In this document: positions 23,347 to 36,049 of the stretch, in pieces
Layout: each line of letters opens with the position of its first letter
Position numbering within the stretch: the stretch's first letter is position 1
Origin: Paramoeba atlantica
Lineage: Eukaryota; Protista; Discosea
DNA length: 64,000 nucleotides
Reading direction: 5' to 3'
NCBI GenBank assembly: GCA_977017575.1
Contig: CDRNVI010000140.1
Coordinates: 248,001-312,000, forward strand
The notes under the pieces: generated by a model
The model's input: the letters and a program-made list of their open reading frames with translations, nothing else
The model's database searches: none
Told to the model about the DNA's origin: nothing
Made by a program: the position numbers and the translations under genes

Positions 23347-23811
23347 TTTTTTGTGGAAATTTTTGTTCCTGGAGAGAAGGACCGTTCACAAAAGAAGAAA
23401 AAGAATGAAAGGGGGGGGAGGGGAAAAAAAGGGGGAGAAAGAAAGGGTTGTTGGGTTGAAATGAAAACCTGAAAAAAGAATGAAAGAAAAACTTTTTCGC
23501 CGCTCCAACCCCTCTCGACGAGCACTCCCTTCTCTCCCAAAGTCTTTTTGCAATCTCGATTACCAAAAAAGGACATATTTTTTTTGACTTAACGAAAGGG
23601 GTTATTTTTCGATTGTATAAAATTTAAAAAGACCGTTAGAGTCAAAGGAGTGCTCGCACAAAAGTCGTGACGGTGAAAAAGTTTGCTCTTTCGCTGCAAA
23701 AAGCTTTCTTTTTCCTATTTTTTTTGTTTTTTCACTTTTTTGGTGGGTGTGTCTCTTTGTTGTTCAACACAGGCTTTCCTCAAAAAACTTCCACCCCCCC
23801 CACCTTTCACA
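23347..23811. promoter_or_regulatory. Bidirectional promoter region between CCT3 and importin alpha
   Basis: Divergent start codons at 23346 (-) and 23812 (+). Confidence 0.4.
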
Positions 23812-25395
23812 ATGGCTTCTCGGACAAACCAAGAGAATTTAGGAAAAGCTTTTGATCGGAAAAAAGAATTTAAGAAAGGGATTGATGTTTCCGAATCTCG
23901 TCGAAGAAGGGTTGATCAGTCCGTTTCAATTCGAAAGAACAAACGGCAAGAAATGGTCGCAAAGAAACGTCAGTTACGGTTGGATGATGAACCCTCCAAT
24001 ACCTATGAACCAACTGATGGAGAATTGTTAGAATTGATTCGAAATATTCACAACCAAGACGCTAACATCCGGCTTGAATCGGTTATTCAAATTCGAAAGT
24101 TGCTCTCCTCAGAACACAGTCCCCCAATCGCCGAAGTCATTCACACAGGAAGTTTGCCGGTTTTTATTCAATTTCTCGAGAAACACGACGATCCAAAACT
24201 TCAATTTGAATCTGCCTGGGTTTTAACAAATATTGCTTCCGGAACATCAGATCAAACCGAACTTGTTGTCAACTCTGGAGCCATCCCTGCTTTTGTATCT
24301 TTGCTTGGTTCCCAAAATGATGATCTCCGCGAACAAGCTGCGTGGGCTCTTGGAAATATTGCTGGAGATTCGCCTCATTTTCGTGATCGTGTTCTCCAAG
24401 CTGGAGCTTTGCAACCGTTACTCCATTGTTTAACTACTTCTTCTAAAATTGGGATGTTGCGAAACTGCAGTTGGACCCTTTCCAACTTTTGTCGTGGAAA
24501 GCCTCCCCCTCCTTTTCAATATCTTCAACCAGCCATCTCTGTCCTTAATGCTCTCCTTAATGCTCCTGATGACGAAATTTTGACAGACGTTTGCTGGGCG
24601 TTGTCTTATTTAACCGATGGAACCAATGATCGAATTCAAGCAGTTGTGAATGAGAGAGATATTGTTCCTCGTGTTGTGGAACTTTTAGATCATGATACTC
24701 CATCTGTCCAAACTCCTGCCCTTCGTGTGATTGGTAATATTGTGACAGGTGACGAGAGCCAAACACAAGCTGTGTTACATTGCCCCATGGCTTTGCCTCT
24801 CTTGAAGAAATTATTGTCTCATCCCAATAAGGCTGTTCGTAAGGAAGCGTGCTGGGGAATCTCGAATGTCACCGCTGGAACAGTCCCCCAGATCCAATGT
24901 GTTATGGAAGCTGGCTTAATCCCAATTATTGTTGATATGATGGCCTCTTCTGAATTTGAAATTCGAAAAGAAGCTGCTTGGACCCTTTCGAATGCTTCTT
25001 CTTGTGGAAACCCTGACCAGGTCCTTTATCTTGTCAACCAAAATGTCCTCCCCTTATTCTGTAGTTTGTTAAATTGCTATGACCAAGCAACAATTTCGAT
25101 TTGCCTCGATGGAGTCGAGAACATCCTTAAACTTGGAAAAGACACCTCTCGGTTTGGCACTCCCAATCCCTTTGTTCGAATGGTAGAAGAATGCGATGGG
25201 CTTTCGAAAATTCATGACCTGTCCAATCACCAAAATGCAGGCATCTTCGAGAAAGTTTCCGGGATCCTCGATTACTTCGATGATGAAGAGGGTGGAGATT
25301 ACAATGACCCATTTGAACCTCAGGTACAACAAGGTCAAGGACAATATGCTTTTGGGGCGGGTGTGAATAACTACAATGGAACTTTCAACTTTTGA
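23812..25395 (+). CDS. KPNA: Importin subunit alpha (IBB domain plus ARM repeats), intronless
   Basis: IBB RRRRVDQSVSIRKNKRQEMVAKKR; ARM motifs FESAWVLTNIASGT, AAWALGNIAGDS, WTLSNFCRGK, ALRVIGNIVTG, KEACWGISNVTAG; ends GTFNF. Confidence 0.97.
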   Translation: MASRTNQENLGKAFDRKKEFKKGIDVSESRRRRVDQSVSIRKNKRQEMVAKKRQLRLDDEPSNTYEPTDGELLELIRNIHNQDANIRLESVIQIRKLLSSEHSPPIAEVIHTGSLPVFIQFLEKHDDPKLQFESAWVLTNIASGTSDQTELVVNSGAIPAFVSLLGSQNDDLREQAAWALGNIAGDSPHFRDRVLQAGALQPLLHCLTTSSKIGMLRNCSWTLSNFCRGKPPPPFQYLQPAISVLNALLNAPDDEILTDVCWALSYLTDGTNDRIQAVVNERDIVPRVVELLDHDTPSVQTPALRVIGNIVTGDESQTQAVLHCPMALPLLKKLLSHPNKAVRKEACWGISNVTAGTVPQIQCVMEAGLIPIIVDMMASSEFEIRKEAAWTLSNASSCGNPDQVLYLVNQNVLPLFCSLLNCYDQATISICLDGVENILKLGKDTSRFGTPNPFVRMVEECDGLSKIHDLSNHQNAGIFEKVSGILDYFDDEEGGDYNDPFEPQVQQGQGQYAFGAGVNNYNGTFNF

Positions 25396-25977: not shown

Positions 25978-28900
25978 ATGGCTTCTCAACAAGGTCAATC
26001 CATCTTTTGGAAGGCAACAAACCCAAAAGATAACAAACGAGATGACCTTTCAATGTACAATGGTCGAAAGGTCGACTATAAGTCTGATCGGTTAGGTCCT
26101 GGAGTTTACGAGATTCAAGCGGAGGCTGTGGGGGCTGGGTTGATGGCGTTGAGACATGTTTCTCTCACTTTGAAGGTTTGGGAAAGTGGTCAAGTAATTC
26201 TTTCGGCTGTGGGTGAAGTAAGCCCAAAAGAGCGTGAGTGGAAACAAACTTTTAAAATTGAAAATCATGGGAAGATTGAGTATGATTGTGTTGGTGTGGC
26301 TGCTCACTCGTTGAAGAATTTGAAATTTAAAACAAGATTGATGCGAGCTGATTTGCCACTTGCTTCTACTGCAAATCTTGAAGCTGCACCTTCTGTGTTG
26401 TTGAAATCTTCCCAGGGTTTTGTTTCCATTTTATTTGCCTTTGCCTCTTTCTCTTGATGGCTCATTCATTTTTACTCACCACAACATTTCAGGTGAAGGA
26501 GGACCAGAAGTTGTCAGGACAATCTATCCCCCTGTTTTGCCAAATATTTGTTGGTCGAGACGATTGTCTGAAACATTCCCTTCTCATCAAGAGTTTTCTG
26601 TCACTCCTTATGAGGGGATGCGTCTCGCTGGGTTGGGTCTTCGTATGAAGCGTTATATCGGTCAGAATAATATCTTTTCTTTTTGCTATCTTTTCTTTTT
26701 AATATCTTTTCTTTTTAATATCTTTTTTCTGCTGTCTCACTCGCTTCCCCTCTCTCTCTCTCTTCCCCTTTTTTAGATGCGGAGACTGCACAAGGAAGAT
26801 TGCCTGTCATGAATCCTTTCAAAAAATCTCCTGCTGGTCCTCGTATGGTTCCTACTTCCCCCTTTTCCATATTTTTTTCTTATTTTTTTTTTTTTCGTTT
26901 CTCTGTTTATTTAACTTTTACTCTCATAAAATAGGGAGTTCCTCTTGGTGGTATTGGAGCTGGGACCATTGGTCGAGGATGGTTTGATTTTTTCACTTAT
27001 TTGTTGCACTTATTTTTTTTTGTGTTTTTGTTCTTTTTTTGCACCTCTTTTTTCTTTTTTTTTGTAACTAAAATTGTGATTAAGGCGGGGTGACTTTGGA
27101 CGATGGTCGATTCTCCCTGGGTTTCCTAACTACAACATCTTAGATGCTGGTTTCTTTTTCTTCTTCTTCTTCTTTCAAGGAAAAAAGAGTATTGGAATTA
27201 ATCATATCTTTGATCAGATAACTTTTCTGTGTATATTAAACGTGGGAAGAGAGATCCTGTTGCGACTGTTCTTCAACCAACCAAACCTTCTTCTCGAAAG
27301 TTGAAGAAAGCTTGGAATTTTGACATCTCTGGAGAGAAATGTACTAATTACTCTCTTTATCCTCAGAGCTTTACTGAGTATAACGAACCAGATGGTTTTT
27401 TCCCTTTCTTTTAGTGATTTCCAACTTCTTTTCATTTATTGATATTCTTTTTTTTTAAAAAAAAAAAAGACCAAATCTCGCTTACTTGTCGACAAGTGTC
27501 CCCTTTCTTGCCTCACAACTACAAAGAAAGCAGTTATCCTGTTGGTGTGTTTGAATGGACAATCGAAAACAGATCAGATTACGAAGCTGAAGTTGCTTTG
27601 ATGTTCACTTTCCAAAATGGAATTGCTGAATCTTATGACAAGTTTTTTTTTAAAATCTTTATTTTTCAAGATAGATGATGTCTTGTTTGTTTGTTGTTCT
27701 TGTGTCTTGATTGGTGATTGTGGGGGAGAGAGGTGTTGTTCTTGTGATTGGGTCTGTTTTTGTTGTGTTTTGGTTTTTTTTTTTGTGGAAGTTTAGTTGG
27801 TTGTCTTAATTTTCTGGTTTGAAACATTTTTTTTTTGTCTAGTGATGGTGGACATCGAAATATCTCTTTCAAGAACAAGACCAAAGATGGCTCCGATGTG
27901 GTTGGAGTCGAGCTCAAGTATGCCATTTTTCTTTCTATCTTTCTTTGCTTTTTTTTTTTCTATTCTCTTTTTCCTTCTTTTTTGCTTAGAAATCTCTTTG
28001 CACAGATATAATTTGCCCACTCACGGGAGAATGAAAAAAGAAGTTTTGAAGAAAAAAGCCCAAAATGAAGCGAATTTAGCTGATCGTTTTCGAGAGTCGG
28101 TAATTTGAGTGCTTTTATTTTTTTTTTTGAATTTTTTTTTGAATTTTTTTTTGAATTTTTTTTGAATTTTTTGATTCGAGAAATCTTTTTTATTCTTTTT
28201 TGTTTTCTTTTTTCTCATTCTGATTATTTTTTATCCTTAGGGTCCAGGTCCTAATATTAGAGAGTCAGGAGGAGCAGCGGAGGGTGGTGCGTTTTCTGGA
28301 GATGGACTTCGAATCTCTTCCTTTAATGTGAAACTCGACGATGATGAAACTCAAGATCCAATGGCTTTCGCGATTTCTGTTCGCTTTTTACTTTTTTCAA
28401 TTCTTTTAAATGATACCATTATTATTTTAATAAAAAGAATATTAGAAGAGGGATTTATTTTATGGGATTAATTTTTTTGAATTAGGTTTCTTCTCCAGAT
28501 GCAGATGCAGAGTTAACACATCACTCAAAATTTTTGATTGAGGGAAAAACTGATACACATGCCTGGAAGGCTCGCACTCTCTGGAAACATTTTTCGGAAC
28601 ATGGAAAACTTTCTAATCAAGAATCTCTTTCTCCTTCTGATCCAGGTCTTTTCTTACTTTTTATTTCTTCCTTTGATCTTTCTTTGGCTCTTTGTCCTCC
28701 CCTTTTCTTTTTTGTTTTCTTTTTTGTTTTATTTTGCGCCTTCTGTTTTCTGTTTTCTTTTATTGAATTAACCCTATAAAAAAAAGGGCAAGTGATCGGA
28801 GCTGCGGTGTGTGGTAAAGTAAAGGTCCCACCTGGTAAAATCAGTCAAATTGTTTTTTCATTGGCTTGGGATGTTCCAATTGTTCGTTTTAATTCTGGCG

Positions 28901-31900
28901 CTGGGTTTTTATTTATTTATTTATTTATTATTTATTTTTTAATTTGTGATTCTTTCTCGTCTTTTTTCTTTTTTTCTTTTCATCTTTTTCTTATTGGTTT
29001 CCAAAATAGTTACTTCCGACGATACACAAACTTCTATGGAAGAACAGGACAAAATGCACCACTTATTGCGACCGATGGGTTGAGTGATTTTAGAGATTGG
29101 GTCAATCAAATTGAAAAATGGCAAACTCCAATTCTTCAGGATTCGAATTTGCCTGATTGGTATAAGCAGGTGAATATCTATTTTTTTCTTTTTTTTCTTT
29201 TTCAAATGGAAGTTGAGGAAGAGAGAAGAGAACGAGAACGAGAACGAAAGAACGAGATTGTTTCTTTCGATGTCTTTGTTGACCAAACGTTTGAATAGGC
29301 CTTATTCAATGAATTGTATTACATTGTTGAAGGAGGTTCGATTTGGATTGGAGAAAGAGTTTCTGATGATCTTGAGTTGCGAAAAAATCAAATGGTGGTC
29401 AAACCTGATCGAGTCGATCAAGAGACTTTTCGAACTGTTGGAAGATTTGGGTATATTTTTTTCCCTTCTTTTATTTGATTTTAAGAGAAGTGAGAATGAA
29501 GCAAATATTTTTTACTTTTCAAAAATAATATTTTATTTTTTCGATTAATTTTTCCTTTCCTTTTCTTCCTATTTCAGGTATCTTGAAAGTCTTGAATACA
29601 TCATGGTCAACACATACGATGTCCATTTCTATGGTTCTTGGGCTCTTATTATGTTGTTTCCTTTACTTGATCTGTCATTGCAAGCTGATTTTTGTAATTC
29701 GACTTTGATGACTCATGCAATTGAATGGAAAACTCTCCATTCTGGGTATTTTCTCTCTTTCTTTTCTCTCTTTCTTTTCTCTCTTTCTTTTCTCTCTTTC
29801 TTTTCTCTCTTTTCTCCTGATTCTCTTTTCTCTTTTTCCCTTTTTCACACAAATTCTCCTTGTACAATGTAGAGACAAAGCTATTCGAAAAGTTAAAGGT
29901 GCTGTTCCTCATGATCTTGGAAACCCTGGTGATGATCCTTGGACTATGGTCAATTCTTACTGTATCCAAGTATTTTTTTCTTTGTTTTTATCATTTTAAC
30001 TTTTCCCGTCTTCCTCTGCTCTCTTTTTTCTCTTTTCTCTTTTTTCTTGGCTAAAAAATTTCAATCTCCAGGAAATTAATTCATGGAAAGATTTGAACAG
30101 TAAACTTGTTCTTCAAGTCTACAGAGATTACCATGTGACACAAGATATTGAATTTTTGAAACAATGTTGGCCTGTTGTGCAAATTGCGGTTGATTATGTT
30201 TCGAAGTTTGATAAGGATGGTGATGGTTTGCTTGAGAATGAAGGATTTCCTGATCAGGTCTTTTTTCTTTCTTGGTCTTTTCTCTCTTTTTTTATTCTCT
30301 TGAATAAAAATTTTCTTTTTTTTTTCTTTTTAACAGACATATGATACTTGGTCTGCGACCGGTCCAAGTGCTTACTGTGGTGGTCTTTGGGTTTGCGCTA
30401 TGTCTGCTTGTGAGAAAATGGCAGGTTTATTATTATTTCTTTTTGACTGAAAAGACTCTTAGTGAGATTGTATTGTTTGTTGTGTTAGGTGTTTGTGAAA
30501 TTGAATAATTTATTATTTTTGTGAGTTTTTGAGCTTTCGGTTTTGTTCTTTTGCTTAATTCCTCTTTTTCAAAAACAGAGGTGTTGGGAGAACCTGTCAA
30601 AGCCAAAGTCTTCCACGAAAAATGGGAAAAAGCCAAAAAAGCCTATCACGACAAATTGTGGAGTGGAGATTATTACCTTTATGATACAAGTGATAGTGAT
30701 CATTTTGATTCAATTCAAGCTGATAGTATGTGTGGGCAATGGTGGGCACGTGCTTCGGGATTGCCTTGTATTTCTGAAGATTCTTGTGTTAAATCTTCTT
30801 TGAAGAAAATCTTTGAGTTTAATGTCAAGAAGTTTCAGTGTGGGCAAATTGGTCCTATTAATGGTATGAAACCTGATGGGAAGATTGATACGTCTTGTAT
30901 GCAGTCTGTCGAGGTATTTAAAATTATTATTTTTCATGATTATTTTGGAAAATAAGAGTGCTGTCTCTTTTGAATGGTTGAATTTTTCTTAATTTCTTCT
31001 CTTTGATTAGGTTTGGACTGGGACTGCATATGGGCTTGCCTCAGCAATGATGCAGGAAGGGTTAATCGAGGAAGCATTTTCGACTGCAAAAGGAATCGCC
31101 AGAGTCACATATGAGACGGTTGGTTATATGTTTCAGACACCCGAAGCTTGGGATACTAGCGGTAATTACCGTGCATTGGCTTATATGCGCCCACTTGCTA
31201 TTTGGGGAATGCAGTATGCCTGGGAGCATGGAGCTCAACAACTCAGGCCAAATCCTAATCAGTATCTTCTTTTTTTTTTTCTTTTGATTTCTTTTTCTCT
31301 TTTTTTCATCGAAGATTATTGCGCTTTCCTTTTTTTTTTTTAATATTTATTTTCAAAAGGGATCTTCTCGAGACAGAACTCGCTGCTGAAATTAAGGCAC
31401 TCAAATCATCTGGTGTGTTTGGCCTTGGGCTAGGATCAGGAGGATCAAAAGAGAAGAAGAAGGCTCTCCCAACGCTTCACGTTGTCTTTGTTGGCGAAAC
31501 AAAGACAAGTAATATTCATGACTTGTTCCTTGCTTGTTGGAAACGTCACCCTGTCGATGATTTCATTCGGGCTTCCGCTGAGGGCGAAATTGAAATTGCA
31601 GGAGAGGAAACTTTAAGTAGTGGTGGACCTGTGAAGTATAAGTTAATTCTCTGTGACACTCGCGAAACTGGAAAGATGATGATTCAATGCAAGCATGCGG
31701 CGGTGATTGTTTGTTCTTACAATGTGGCAAACAAGTCGTCTCGTGATTGGATGGAAAAGGTGTTTTTCCCTGAAGCTCGTGAGAATCTCCCACATACACC
31801 TCTATTGATGGTTGCCACTGGGATTGAAATTCGTCAATCTCCCCAACCTCCTCCAGAATATGTTTTGACATCGGAGGAAACAAAAGCTTATTCGATTGAA

Positions 31901-32107
31901 CTTCAAAAGTCTTGTCCAAATATTCGATCTCATGTTGAGTGTTCTCCTGTGACGTTTAAGGGTTTTAGAACTTTAGCGAATGCTGGTCTTTTGATTTGTT
32001 TGATTGGAAAGGTCAAAGAATCTGAAAAGTCCAATTTGCCAGAGGCAGGAGCTGCGGCCATGGAAAAAATGAAGCAAAAAGATGATCAAAATTGTCTCGT
32101 GATGTAA
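25978..32107 (+). CDS. GBA2: GH116 non-lysosomal glucosylceramidase (GBA2-like) with an N-terminal extension and an in-frame C-terminal degenerate Rho-like domain ending in a CAAX box (CLVM)
   Basis: [92 protein letters not shown]. Phase-2 intron 31262-31359 joins ..NPNQ to DLLETE.. (ORF to 32107). Confidence 0.9.
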
Positions 32108-32636: not shown

Positions 32637-33570
32637 TTACTTTTTCAAGAGAGACAAGAATTCTTGGCGGCTCCTGTGGTCTTCGCGGAAGACTCCACAC
32701 ATAGCGCTGGTTGTTGTTGTAGAGCCTGGCTTCTGTGCTCCACGCATAACCATACACATGTGTCTGTTGAATAAAGAAGTTAATATCTCCAATTGTAATA
32801 ACAGGAAGAAAGAGAGAGAAGAGAGAGAGAAGACATACACGCACTCACAAACGACAGCGACACCAGTTGGTTCAACGGCTTCCATGATGGCGTTTGCGAT
32901 GTCTCGAGTAAGTCTTTCTTGGATCTAAAAAGAAAAAGATATCCTCCTGAGCTACTCGAGAGAAAAACGAAGTTTGAAAAGAAGAAAAAGATAAAAAACC
33001 TGAAGTCGTCGAGCAAACATCTCTGCGATCCGAGCCAACTTGCTCAACCCCAGAACCTAAACAAAAAGATAAGAAACCAAAAAACAAAAATGTTATTTTC
33101 TAAAAAAAAAATAGATCTAAAAAAACCTTATCTTTTGGAATATAAGCCATGTGTACTTTCCCAAAGAAAGGGACCATGTGGTGTTCACAAAGAGAGTAGA
33201 TTTCAATATCTTTCACAACAATCATATCATCATGTCCAGGATCCATTGTAAAAACAGCGCCATTGACAACATCTAAAAAAGAAAAATTTGAGAAAAAACA
33301 AAAAAAAAAGAAAATATCAAAAAAAAACAAAAAGAAAAAGAAAGAAGAAGAAAGGTCTTTCCGCAAACCTTTAAGTGTCTCATTGTATCCTTTCGTAAAG
33401 AATTGGAGGGCCTTTGCACACCTCTCAGGTGTTTTCTTCAACCCTTCTCTCTCTTTATCTTCCCCAACTATATCAATAATCTCCGCAAATGATTTTGCAA
33501 GGGCAACAGTTGTTTTATCTTCTTTGACTAAGTCCGAACCATAATCGTACTCATCCGCCATAGAACCCAT
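32637..33570 (-). CDS. GCH1: GTP cyclohydrolase I
   Basis: [49 protein letters not shown]; GT-AG exons. Confidence 0.95.
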
Positions 33571-33840: not shown

Positions 33841-36049
33841 TTACAACAAGAGTTGTTCGTTGATATCAAAGGGTCTCAGAGTGGAGAGTTGGGGAACCTA
33901 AAATTTTCCACCAATCAGAAAAAATATTTCATTTTTTTTTCAAAAAAAAAAAGTGGAGAGTGGAACAGAGGAAACCTGTGTCAGCTTTCTGTGGATGATG
34001 AGTTTCCTAATCTTCATCACCAACTCCGCGTAAGAAATATCTCCACCTAAAATATTTTGTTCAGAAAATTCAAAAAGAAAGATCAAAACAGAGAAGAAAA
34101 GAAACCAGAAGCGTTAACGACTTGCAAAAATGCCCAAGTCATTGCTCCATATGATTCTCCTCCAAATTGGGAACCAATGGAGACGTCACTATCCTCACAG
34201 CCGCTGTGTTAAAAAGGAAAATAGATCAGAGGAAGAAGGAAGAATTTGGTTTGGAGGCTCAAAATACCTGATCAAAATCACATCCTTGGGACCACAATTG
34301 CCTGTTGGGATGTAGTAAATACAAATTCTGTGACTCAATAGAGCAGAAAGAAAAATTCAAAAATCAAACCACGCCCAATCTTATGAAATCCATGAACCTT
34401 TGCTCGTCGCCTACGTCCTCCAACCTTTGCAGGAGCCTGATGGCGAGCAATCTTTTTAATTTTTGTGTGCTTTTCTGTCTTTTCTTTTTCAGGTTCGGTG
34501 GTATAAATTCTCTCTGAATTCTCTCTGGGATAAAGCAAGAAATCAATATTTTCTTCAGCGAGGTTTTGAGTGAAAAGGGAAGATATTGTGAGAGAGAACC
34601 TAAATTCGCCATCTGAAGTTTCAAAAATGATTCGTTGGAATGGGAGATCCAAAATTGTACCAGAATGGCAACAATCCATCACACAAGTGACTCGAACACC
34701 GTCCGAAACTCGATCAACCAGAAGTTTTTTCAACTGATAAGAAGAGCTCAATTATTGAAGGTCATCAAACATACTCTCAGTTCAAAAGAAAAAGAGTGAA
34801 CCTCATCATCAATGATAACTCCAGCAGTGTCTTTGTCGCAAGGGCAAATCGCCTCATCCATGCCATCTTCTTCATCTTTATTTTTATCCTTAACTTGAGC
34901 TAAAAAACCAAAACTTAGTTCTATTTACAAGAATGAAAAAATATTAATTAGAGAAAAAAGGCGAACTTCCATGTCCACTGTAGTTGAACACAAGTGAATC
35001 TCCGGGAGAAGCGCCCTGAGTGAGCCAATGAATTCCCTCGAGAATATTTTTCTTGGTAGGCCAAGTACGTTTGTCCTTTTTAAAATTTATCAGTTTTTCC
35101 AAAAAAAACTTCGAATTTGTTTGAATTCTTCAAAAAAAAAAACACGAACAGGATTGCCTTCGTCGACAAGAAGTCGAATGTGCTCATCCTCAAACCCAAA
35201 ATGTGAAATCAAAGCTTCTCGAAAATGATGGGCATCGTTAACACACCCATCCAATCCTCCATCACCCTAAGAAAGAAGGAAATTAGAAAAATGATAAAAA
35301 GATATTATTTCAAGAACAAAAAAGAATATTTTTTTGAGATAGAGGAAGAAATTTCAACCTTAGGACTATCCAAATAATTGATACCAATGACAAGAGCTCT
35401 TTTGTGAGATTTTGGGTGGGGTTTCCATGTTGGGGTTGTGCTAATATAACTGAGGGAGATGGTGATTGTTGCCTCTCCAACAGGTTTTCCTTCATTGTCT
35501 TTTAGGGGGAGAGTTTCCTTGAAAGAAAAAAGTCAAAAAAAAAAGACAAGAGAAGGAAGAATCAATTTGGGAGATGAAAACCTTTTTTAATTTTTTCCCT
35601 GAATAATATTCATCCAAAGAGAAAGTAGCAGCTCCAATGAAATCATCTTTTCGGCATCGATCTTCATCCCAGACCTGAGAAGAAAATCAGACAGTCATCA
35701 CAGGATTAACAGGGAAAAAGAAGAAAAGGGAACCTGAAAGACAACTTCTGTGGGTCTTCCTTCAACAGGAACTGAATAATCTGAAACATAATCGAAGAAT
35801 TATCAAATCAAATTTTGTAAACAAAACTATTTCAAATCTAAAAACCAAACCTTTATTCCAAACAGGATCTTCACAGTCAGTGAAAGTGGTGGACCGTTCC
35901 TTTTCCACACCATCCACCAAAACAACAACATACGGGTCACTCTTTCCTCCCCCACTCGAAAAATACGAATCCATATCAGGAAGAGAACTAGCTTCATGGA
36001 GTGTGGCATACAAAACCCCTGTCTCTTCTCTCTTTTCCTCTTCAGCCAT
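33841..36049 (-). CDS. Metacaspase (C14 peptidase) with an N-terminal C2 domain
   Basis: C2 motifs [23 protein letters not shown]. Peptidase motifs [22 protein letters not shown] (His), [17 protein letters not shown] (Cys). Ends VPQLS..INEQLLL*. Confidence 0.9.

Follow-up and report, generated by a model that had tools for sequence, protein, structure and literature searches.

A GBA2-type glucosylceramidase gene of Paramoeba atlantica that runs into a predicted Rho-derived domain with degenerate nucleotide-binding motifs and a CaaX box

Mammalian GBA2 stays on membranes although it has neither a transmembrane segment nor a known lipid anchor, and to our knowledge the way in which it does so is an unsolved question. 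The locus described here raises a related one: does a gene for an enzyme of this type really continue into a Rho-like domain with a prenylation signal, and if so, what would such a tail do for the enzyme? The locus lies in a stretch of 64,000 nucleotides from Paramoeba atlantica, which we refer to as the window; the assembly to which it belongs measures 45.7 Mb.

The gene has about 15 or more exons (Table 1). Its extent was determined from the placement by tblastn of the N-terminal ORF of a relative (L005) and of the ORF P0007, from a TARA metagenome scaffold, onto the window, together with PF04685 matches on the exons, and its start peptide is homologous to the start of a relative, MASASSGVLIWKVTNPKD. 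The original prediction had placed the start at 31047, but the ATG there is one within the last GH116 exon. Single exons and the natural ORFs of relatives served as queries throughout.

Table 1. Features of the fusion gene in the window. A slash marks an exon boundary.
Feature	Position	Strand	Basis or remarks
Whole fusion gene	25978..32107	+	predicted GH116 N-terminal domain, then catalytic domain, linker, pseudo-Rho domain and CaaX box
Exon 1 (from conserved ATG) and GH116 N-terminal-domain exons	25978..28905	+	tblastn blocks; boundaries approximate
N-terminal-domain blocks	25978-26388, 26537-26659, 26770-26982, 27086-27148, 27214-27639, 28004-28096, 28486-28905	+	tblastn
GH116 catalytic-domain exons	29110..31261	+	PF04685 matches and tblastn
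Exact last GH116 exons	29578-29745, 29873-29969, 30072-30257, 30337-30424, 30579-30913, 31011-31261	+	
Catalytic nucleophile Glu codon	29585..29587	+	motif GYLESLEY; YLE at 29579-29587 aligns to P0007 E79
Catalytic acid/base Asp codon	30343..30345	+	motif FPDQ/TYDTW; TYD at 30337-30345 aligns to P0007 D229
Junction intron	31262..31359	+	98 nt, GT-AG, phase 2, T-rich; if retained, in-frame stop at 31341-31343
Terminal exon	31360..32107	+	1 base finishing the Gln codon, 248 codons, stop
Linker (tail residues 1-37)	31361..31471	+	conserved DLLETELxxEI helix, then Gly/Lys-rich low-confidence stretch; alignment A1
Pseudo-Rho G domain (tail residues 38-219)	31472..32017	+	AF2, Foldseek, PDB phmmer
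Degenerate P-loop position G45-E-T-K-T-S-N-I-H53	31493..31519	+	alignments A1, A3
G4-equivalent TGIE	31817..31828	+	Cdc42 equivalent is TQID
Family signature block (b6-a5)	31931..32017	+	most conserved part of the tail; alignments A1, A2
CaaX box CLVM and TAA stop	32093..32107	+	read from the sequence

The enzyme part belongs to family GH116. The exon at 30581-30913 matches positions 186-294 of the 361 in the PF04685 profile and that at 31011-31259 matches positions 295-361 (E 2.6e-24), leaving the catalytic domain complete through its C-terminal end; a genome scan recovered more PF04685 exons. The N-terminal exons align by tblastn to the N-terminal ORF of a relative, and PF12215 was detected on the relatives' ORF; Pfam searches of exon 1 and of a paralogue's C-terminal exon gave no match. 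The catalytic domain of P0007 matches PDB entry 9wiz (E 9e-131), and its residues E79 and D229 align with chain indices 426 and 578 of 5bvu. With an offset of 15 in both cases these are E441 and D593 of TxGH116, the catalytic residues in the published numbering (PMC10167657). Since the window retains both the catalytic Glu and the Asp, the best reading is that the enzyme part is active. A genome search with the GlcCer synthase model PF13506 found no match, a weak negative, and the natural substrate may therefore be another beta-glucoside, for example a steryl glucoside.

The join between the enzyme and the tail agrees with the splice sites originally proposed. The donor side reads CCT AAT CA/gtatcttc (31260-31263, gt at 31262) and the acceptor side ttttcaaaag/G (31358-31360, ag ending at 31359), and the joined reading N-P-N-Q-D-L-L-E-T-E, with Gln encoded by CA+G, is in phase. 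Likewise, the terminal exon has no start Met of its own, the first in-frame ATG falling at codons 106-107 (MMIQCK), already inside the folded domain. In four diverged environmental relatives (L001-L004) an intron interrupts the same codon, likewise in phase 2, right after [ND]PN; their introns range from 64 to about 310 nt and are mutually unrelated in sequence, and in each of them the GH116 exons lie directly 5' of the tail, in the same orientation. The acceptor site is exactly where the conserved peptide D[LM]LE begins. In P0007 and P0153 the catalytic domain and the tail form one unbroken genomic ORF that lacks the junction intron and reads PHPN-R-DQLAFEME and NPN-Q-DMLEV, respectively, across the join (in P0007, PF04685 spans positions 73-433 and the tail 452-696). 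The recurrence of site and phase among relatives argues that the junction is no chance match. We take the GH116-tail fusion to be confirmed as real from these sequence comparisons, and because at least seven diverged sequences share it, it appears to be old. Since the case for splicing rests on the comparison of relatives, we infer that 31262-31359 is removed in this organism too.

A sequencing run guessed to be RNA (X1) contains 0.74 of the sampled words against an estimated exonic share of the stretch of about 0.77, which is suggestive at most and was given no weight as evidence.

It is very improbable that two separate genes are present, a GBA2 gene ending where the unspliced GH116 frame meets TAA and a Rho-like ORF expressed alone. 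This reading would fit the behavior of prokaryote-style ORF callers, which split the two parts (P0001), and the in-frame ATG near the exon start in L002 and L003. However, no ATG precedes the G domain in the window, L001 or L004, the two parts are just 98 nt apart with conserved coding starting at the acceptor AG, the intron phase is kept in five species, and P0007 and P0153 are continuous ORFs. We therefore rejected the separate-gene reading. A short isoform that keeps the intron, or a start within the gene, may also occur. The suggestion that the intronless terminal exon arose by retroposition was also rejected. It is not supported because relatives carry introns inside the Rho-like region (three in L004, one in L001); in addition, the canonical Rac genes of the window's genome are themselves intronless, and the fusion is old.

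The tail shows the order b1-a1-b2-b3-a2-b4-a3-b5-a4-b6-a5 that is found in small GTPases. An AF2 model of the tail, built from an alignment of only five sequences, has a pLDDT of about 80 in the core, below 50 over residues 1-35, and low confidence past residue 195. In a Foldseek search of the PDB the best matches were Cdc42, Rac and ROP (E on the order of 1e-10 at best, with a range of 3.5e-10 to 5e-9, and TMt 0.65-0.78, about 0.7), and the best 25 matches all belonged to the Rho family. A phmmer search of PDB sequences aligned residues 115-215 with Cdc42 (E 2.9e-6), the best matches all being Cdc42, TC10, Rac or ROP, and hhalign of the tail against the genome's own Rac gave a probability of 94.6%. 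Sequence and structure searches thus agree with the Rho layout that had been proposed, and place this small-GTPase fold nearest to Cdc42, Rac and ROP. Pfam gave zero matches on the tail, Ras included, even at E <= 1; because Pfam is blind to this domain, a search by domain architecture would overlook the fusion. The Rho-insert position between b5 and a4 is occupied by a Pro-rich loop, shorter in the window (QSPQPPPEY) and longer in L003 and P0153; in this loop the model is of low confidence.

The nucleotide-binding motifs have fared differently from the fold. As first noticed in the window, the tail lacks GxxxxGKT, DTAGQ and TKxD (G1, G3 and G4), and the corresponding positions vary across orthologues (alignments A1 and A3). 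At the place of the Rho P-loop GDGAVGKT, neither a Lys nor a Thr is conserved in the tail family: the sequences in the orthologues are KELHSGIR, EDQTSNAR, GESSGIR, EEQTSFAK, HDKGCRD and DEGSGSR, with N, G, F, R or S at the position of the Lys. The DxxGQ of G3 is absent, the window reading CDTRETGK in an unconserved stretch, and the switch II region is unalignable (CDTRETG, LSSDDES, VPSNDIS, ESTEGVE, SSKDQDS). The Asp of G4 that specifies guanine is replaced by Glu in the window (TGIE) and by Ala in L004, and in place of SA[KL] at G5 the window reads CSP. The canonical Racs of the same genome retain GDGAVGKT, DTAGQE and TKxD. With the P-loop Lys and Thr, the DxxGQ of switch II and the Asp of NKxD all gone, nucleotide binding has most likely been lost. 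A GTPase fold with lost nucleotide-binding motifs is the sequence criterion for class I pseudoGTPases, and the G domain is most likely one of these.

Some atypical GTPases bind nucleotide despite altered motifs, and the tail might accordingly be a nucleotide-regulated switch that uses non-canonical phosphate contacts to control the glucosidase or its localisation. The entire G-domain fold is predicted, six of seven orthologues keep a Ser in the P-loop region, and TGIE is similar to G4 and ECSP to G5. We nevertheless consider such a switch unlikely, given that the residue at the P-loop Lys position differs between orthologues, that switch II is variable beyond alignment, that the G4 Asp has become Glu or Ala, and that the Pfam Ras model fails even at E <= 1.

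In contrast to the nucleotide-binding motifs, the b6-a5 block and the C-x-[VL]-M with which the tail ends are kept in all complete C-termini. The CLVM box that had been reported is present directly before the stop, the other complete orthologues end in CAVM, CSVM, CCLM, CVVM and CLVM (the last in P0007), and the same ending is found in the fragments P0009, P0010 and P0017; the boxes compared were CLVM, CAVM, CSVM, CCLM, CVVM, CLVM, CVVM, CLVM and CRVM. The stretch ahead of the CaaX Cys is not polybasic. The genome encodes prenyltransferase alpha repeats (PF01239) and a beta subunit (PF00432, E 2e-71), matches that do not distinguish farnesyltransferase from geranylgeranyltransferase type, whereas the ICMT and RhoGDI Pfam models found no match in an exon-wise genome search, both weak negatives. 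The motif itself suggests that the tail is prenylated.

It is most improbable that the tail is a mere relic, a Rac gene once captured and now decaying without a function. The GTPase motifs are gone, and the tail does diverge faster than the catalytic exon (44% against 86% identity to P0007 by tblastn). However, every relative has kept an open frame, long blocks and the CaaX box are invariant across sequences that are only 42-71% identical, and homologous modules are borne by other enzymes; the relic reading is strongly disfavoured and was rejected.

These homologous modules close RhoGAP proteins (P0012, P0015 and P0033) and an ankyrin-kinase protein (P0022) from other assemblies, and were found by profile search at E 2e-13 to 4e-9. 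They share with the tail the motif VxFVG..(D/E)LF.AC..[RK].PV, and the RhoGAP-fused proteins also the core KGFRTLAN. Their terminal boxes are CRVM and CIVM in the RhoGAP-fused proteins and CAIS in the kinase-fused one. They differ from the tail in the enzyme that precedes the module, and in P0012, P0015 and P0033 a long Pro/Cys-rich insert splits it. We found no RhoGAP- or kinase-linked copy in the window's genome, and a metagenome-contig search with alignment A2 gave 40 pattern matches, none of them confirmed. A search of the literature found no paper on a GH116-Rho fusion or on assemblies GCA_041443065/025. Tentatively, and with somewhat less than even confidence, we suggest that the tail belongs to a module family so far overlooked, derived from Rho, devoid of the P-loop and equipped with a farnesyl box (CxVM). 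A heterotrophic, partly marine protist lineage would have put this module at the C-terminal end of three or more unrelated enzymes (GH116 glucosylceramidase, RhoGAP and ankyrin-kinase), and it may serve as a portable device for membrane targeting, possibly under the control of a chaperone. A genome search found no LHC genes, and the organism is therefore probably heterotrophic.

Known pseudoGTPase domains serve as interaction modules (PMC5593906, PMC12490416). The tail might thus act mainly in protein-protein interaction or autoregulation, docking on GH116 or on a Rho effector or regulator, with its CaaX-like end left unprenylated. The b6-a5 surface block, the most conserved of all and present in the RhoGAP-fused relatives as well, speaks for such a role. 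We regard this as quite unlikely as the whole explanation: a Cys at exactly the fourth position before the stop, with x-[VL]-M after it, in all complete orthologues, together with CRVM, CIVM and CAIS in the other proteins, is hard to explain without CaaX processing. Interaction and anchoring are not mutually exclusive.

We consider it likely that the locus is one gene, encoding a GBA2-type GH116 beta-glucosidase or glucosylceramidase that is extended at its C-terminus by a short helix, then a flexible linker rich in Gly and Lys, the G domain derived from Rho and finally the CaaX box, and that its product is a cytosolic enzyme held on membranes by a farnesylated, nucleotide-independent pseudo-Rho module. 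The terminal Cys, with Met as X, would be farnesylated, and the farnesyl group would tether the enzyme to endomembranes or to the plasma membrane, on the cytosolic leaflet, where its glycolipid substrate would lie. The rigid pseudo-Rho domain would set the orientation of the enzyme on the membrane, and the invariant b6-a5 surface may bind a partner common to the other proteins that bear the module. The proposal that a dead Rho domain supplies a membrane anchor or an interaction module is the most economical one. The parallel originally drawn with Rho and actin biology in mammalian GBA2 is an analogy only: accumulation of GlcCer has cytoskeletal effects, yet the same study gives no physical link between GBA2 and Rho (PMC4372435).

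If the predicted anchor is real, nature has run an experiment in these fusions by giving a GBA2-type enzyme an explicit prenyl anchor, and a lipid anchor would be one evolutionary solution to the membrane-association problem of GBA2. Such a fusion would support the view that placement at the cytosolic leaflet is key for GH116 glycolipid hydrolases. With it, the few pseudoGTPase domains would also gain a member that derives from Rho, and the C-terminal targeting apparatus of Rho, the G-domain scaffold and CaaX, would be seen to have found a new use once the switch was gone. For annotation the locus is a warning: the gene is cut in two by ORF callers, and in one source a relative's tail bears the label 'GTPase SAR1 family protein'.

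Compared with GBA2 (human GBA2, TxGH116, PDB 9wiz and 5bvu), the fusion has the GH116 catalytic domain, probably also the N-terminal one, and the same nucleophile Glu and acid/base Asp, and likewise appears cytosolic, with no signal peptide or transmembrane segment evident; it adds a C-terminal pseudo-Rho domain of about 250 residues with its CaaX box. The GBA2s known to us stop shortly past the catalytic domain, and we know of no lipid anchor in them. With the Rho GTPases (Cdc42, Rac and plant ROP) the tail shares the G-domain fold, to which its best sequence and structure matches belong, and a CaaX box that follows a Lys-containing hypervariable stretch. It differs from them in lacking GxxxxGK[ST], DTAGQE and the Asp of [NT]KxD, in having a Pro-rich loop of variable length at the Rho-insert position, and in being the C-terminal module of an enzyme of about 1150 residues rather than a free 21-kDa switch. 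Its CaaX box has Met as X, the farnesyl type, while Leu is the last residue of several Racs of this genome. RhoBTB and Miro also have a Rho-type domain fused to other domains, but their GTPase is N-terminal, usually binds nucleotide and is without a CaaX box, whereas the G domain of the tail is C-terminal, degenerate and CaaX-ended. In pG1 and pG2 of p190RhoGAP and in other class I pseudoGTPases, a GTPase fold likewise sits inside a larger protein with its G motifs gone and a scaffold role presumed to be nucleotide-free (PMC5593906, PMC12490416). The tail differs from these in being clearly Rho-derived and C-terminal, in keeping its prenylation box and in being joined to a glycosidase, with its loss of nucleotide binding a prediction from sequence.

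The window DNA is eukaryotic in character, with a G+C content of about 36% and short, T-rich GT-AG introns. The last GH116 exon ends in CA|gt at 31261/31262, and the next AG, at 31358-31359, is followed by G GAT CTT CTC GAG ACA GAA, which after splicing would give an in-frame Q-DLLETE. Left unspliced, the GH116 frame reaches a stop at 31341-31343. The original prediction described a GBA2-type gene that continues through this junction into a Rho-like terminal exon without a start methionine of its own; the quoted strings and the junction were all found in the window sequence, and the terminal exon (31360-32107), hereafter the tail, has its first in-frame ATG only at codons 106-107. The 262-aa "ORF" of prokaryotic gene callers (P0001) starts at a TTG within the intron.

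Using the terminal exon as the query, a word search identified five relatives with 42-77% identity. In all four whose contigs were examined (L001-L004), the tail comes straight after GH116 exons that share its strand. In their DNA the donor GT follows immediately after [ND]PN codons and two bases, and the acceptor AG is followed by one codon-completing base, after which the peptide resumes with D[LM]LE[TF]EL (HLL in L002). The four introns (64 nt in L001, ~86 nt in L004, ~280 nt in L002, and ~310 nt in L003) share position and phase, and their sequences are unrelated. The L003 intron (L003:770-1079) is nearly all microsatellite, first (GTTGTG)n and then (TTTCTTTTTG)n, with position and phase kept. 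A tail profile searched against 1.84 billion representative proteins retrieved P0007, a 696-aa protein encoded on a metagenomic DNA scaffold of TARA Oceans, with a complete GH116 catalytic domain at 73-433 (Pfam, E 9e-153) that continues without interruption into a tail at 452-696 (...PHPN-R-DQLAFEMEDEIKALK...CLVM). A second uninterrupted case is P0153 from NCBI assembly GCA_041443065.1 (...RPNPN-Q-DMLEV...). Two relatives thus carry in their genomic DNA, without an intron, the junction that splicing is predicted to create in the window. Together with the matching intron position and phase in four relatives, these uninterrupted reading frames make it very probable that the window gene is a true fusion; that the GH116 part and the tail are separate genes is highly improbable.

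Features of the fusion gene, in window positions
Feature	Position	Strand	Remarks
Fusion gene, conserved initiator region, ~15 exons	25978-32107	+	tblastn of relatives' ORFs, 29748-29814 masked; exon boundaries upstream of 29578 approximate only
Catalytic nucleophile Glu codon, motif YLE	29585-29587	+	same as in P0007
Catalytic acid/base Asp codon, motif TYD	30343-30345	+	same as in P0007

The masked low-complexity stretch sits inside an intron (29746-29872). Directly upstream of the fusion gene is an importin-alpha (ARM-repeat) protein in one long open frame (23677-25392, +), and downstream are a GTP cyclohydrolase I-like gene (~33100-33570, -) and a metacaspase-like gene (~34335-35100, -), the latter speaking against an animal as the source. 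Relatives occur in marine and other metagenomes; no LHC genes were found in the 45.7-Mb genome assembly.

The last position of PF04685 is reached within 31011-31259. Among solved structures, the P0007 catalytic domain is matched by non-lysosomal glucosylceramidases (9wiz, E 9e-131) and by TxGH116 (5bvu, E 1e-121). P0007 residues E79 and D229 align to 5bvu chain indices 426 and 578; an offset of 15 takes both to the residues published as nucleophile (E441) and acid/base (D593) of TxGH116 (PMC10167657). With both catalytic positions matched in the window, the enzyme looks active. The Pfam model for GlcCer synthase found no match in the genome, and we therefore hold the natural substrate to be uncertain.

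The tail has no Pfam match. In a phmmer search against PDB sequences, residues 115-215 match Cdc42 residues 77-178 (E 2.9e-6), and 60/60 of the matches listed are Cdc42, TC10, Rac or ROP. An AlphaFold2 model from an alignment of five sequences has a core (residues 36-195, pLDDT ~80) with the strand-helix order of small GTPases. The Foldseek search against the PDB, named beforehand as a check, returned Cdc42, Rac and ROP (E 3.5e-10 and above, probability 1.00, target TM 0.65-0.78). ESM-Atlas features also indicate the Ras family, and hhalign pairs the tail with one of this genome's canonical Racs at 94.6% probability.

The nucleotide-binding motifs, all retained in the canonical Racs of the same genome, are absent from the tail. 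Across orthologues the Rho P-loop position GDGAVGKT is degenerate (e.g., DEGSGSR), the DTAGQE position is variable and cannot be aligned, TQID/TKxD is replaced by TGIE (TGIA in L004), and SAL by SP[VI]. This is the class I pseudoGTPase pattern as judged from sequence, and it supports the dead Rho domain proposed originally. That the tail is an atypical switch, still regulated by nucleotide, seems unlikely. Intronless canonical Rac/Cdc42-like genes stand in tandem arrays (L008 on C188, L009 on C168, L010 on C164), with endings CIVL, CIIL or CILM; in one L008 copy switch II is disrupted (WDTACPAVSGY), and the L009 copies end in ...NVKGAKR, with no CaaX box.

Conservation in the tail is highest in the family signature block (b6-a5); the conserved motifs are DLFLACWxRxPVxD, SRDWMExxFLPE and VATGIExR. 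That such a tail is a relic is extremely improbable. The proposed prenylation signal likewise holds up: orthologues end in CLVM, CAVM, CSVM, CCLM, CVVM and CLVM (P0007), and tail fragments in CVVM, CLVM and CRVM. Farnesyltransferase classically recognises such an ending, with a cysteine at -4 and Met as X. Both the alpha and the beta prenyltransferase subunits are encoded in the genome; their loci each occur twice with near-identical scores (contigs C15/C53 and C103/C37) and may be haplotigs or a recent duplication in the assembly; the fusion gene is found only once. In an exon-wise genome scan the Pfam models for ICMT and RhoGDI had no match, both weak negatives. An interaction or autoregulatory module that is not prenylated is a rather remote alternative.

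Only ~12 representatives of the tail were found by the profile search among the 1.84 billion proteins. The profile also picks up three proteins from other assemblies (e.g., NCBI GCA_041443025.1), P0012, P0015 and P0033 (E 2e-13 to 5e-7), which combine a RhoGAP domain with the same P-loop-less Rho module as their C-terminal part; in them a long Pro/Cys-rich (zinc-finger-like) insert interrupts the module, a VNIAFVGEDNLGKMELFWACATKKPV stretch is present, and the last residues are CRVM or CIVM. The profile also matches P0022 (961 aa), in which ankyrin repeats and a Ser/Thr kinase domain precede a more divergent copy and a CaaX box, CAIS. The P-loop-less Rho module with its CaaX box has thus been employed more than once as a C-terminal extension. 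In the window's genome the tail is present as one copy. A second GH116/GBA2 paralogue (L011, G000:C179:3500-13000, minus strand ~8140-1628) is without it and ends in two or three short exons and a 67-aa terminal exon (DVTKWLITELKVSEEIADEY...KKQLLAWVSSHRP), which has no Pfam match and by eye looks SAM-like. The retroposed origin once read from the intronless terminal exon is not supported: relatives have introns inside the domain (three in L004, one in L001), Rac genes of the same genome are intronless anyway, and the fusion was in place before at least seven sequences diverged.

We consider it probable that the gene encodes an active cytosolic GH116 enzyme with a farnesyl-tethered C-terminus and a nucleotide-independent, Rho-derived scaffold. 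The farnesylated C-terminus would tether the enzyme to the cytosolic membrane face, and the Rho-derived domain would act as a spacer or orienting scaffold, possibly also as a partner-binding surface. Of this picture, the analysis shows the architecture, the fold, the loss of motifs, the conservation and a genome that encodes prenylation machinery, whereas splicing in this organism, lipidation, lost nucleotide binding, localisation to membranes and the substrate are inferred. GH116 and Rho are both known families, and in the literature searched we found no paper describing their combination. Mammalian GBA2 (Korschen 2013, cited in PMC4372435) is membrane-associated, yet not integral; an explicit anchor would therefore be a sensible evolutionary variant.
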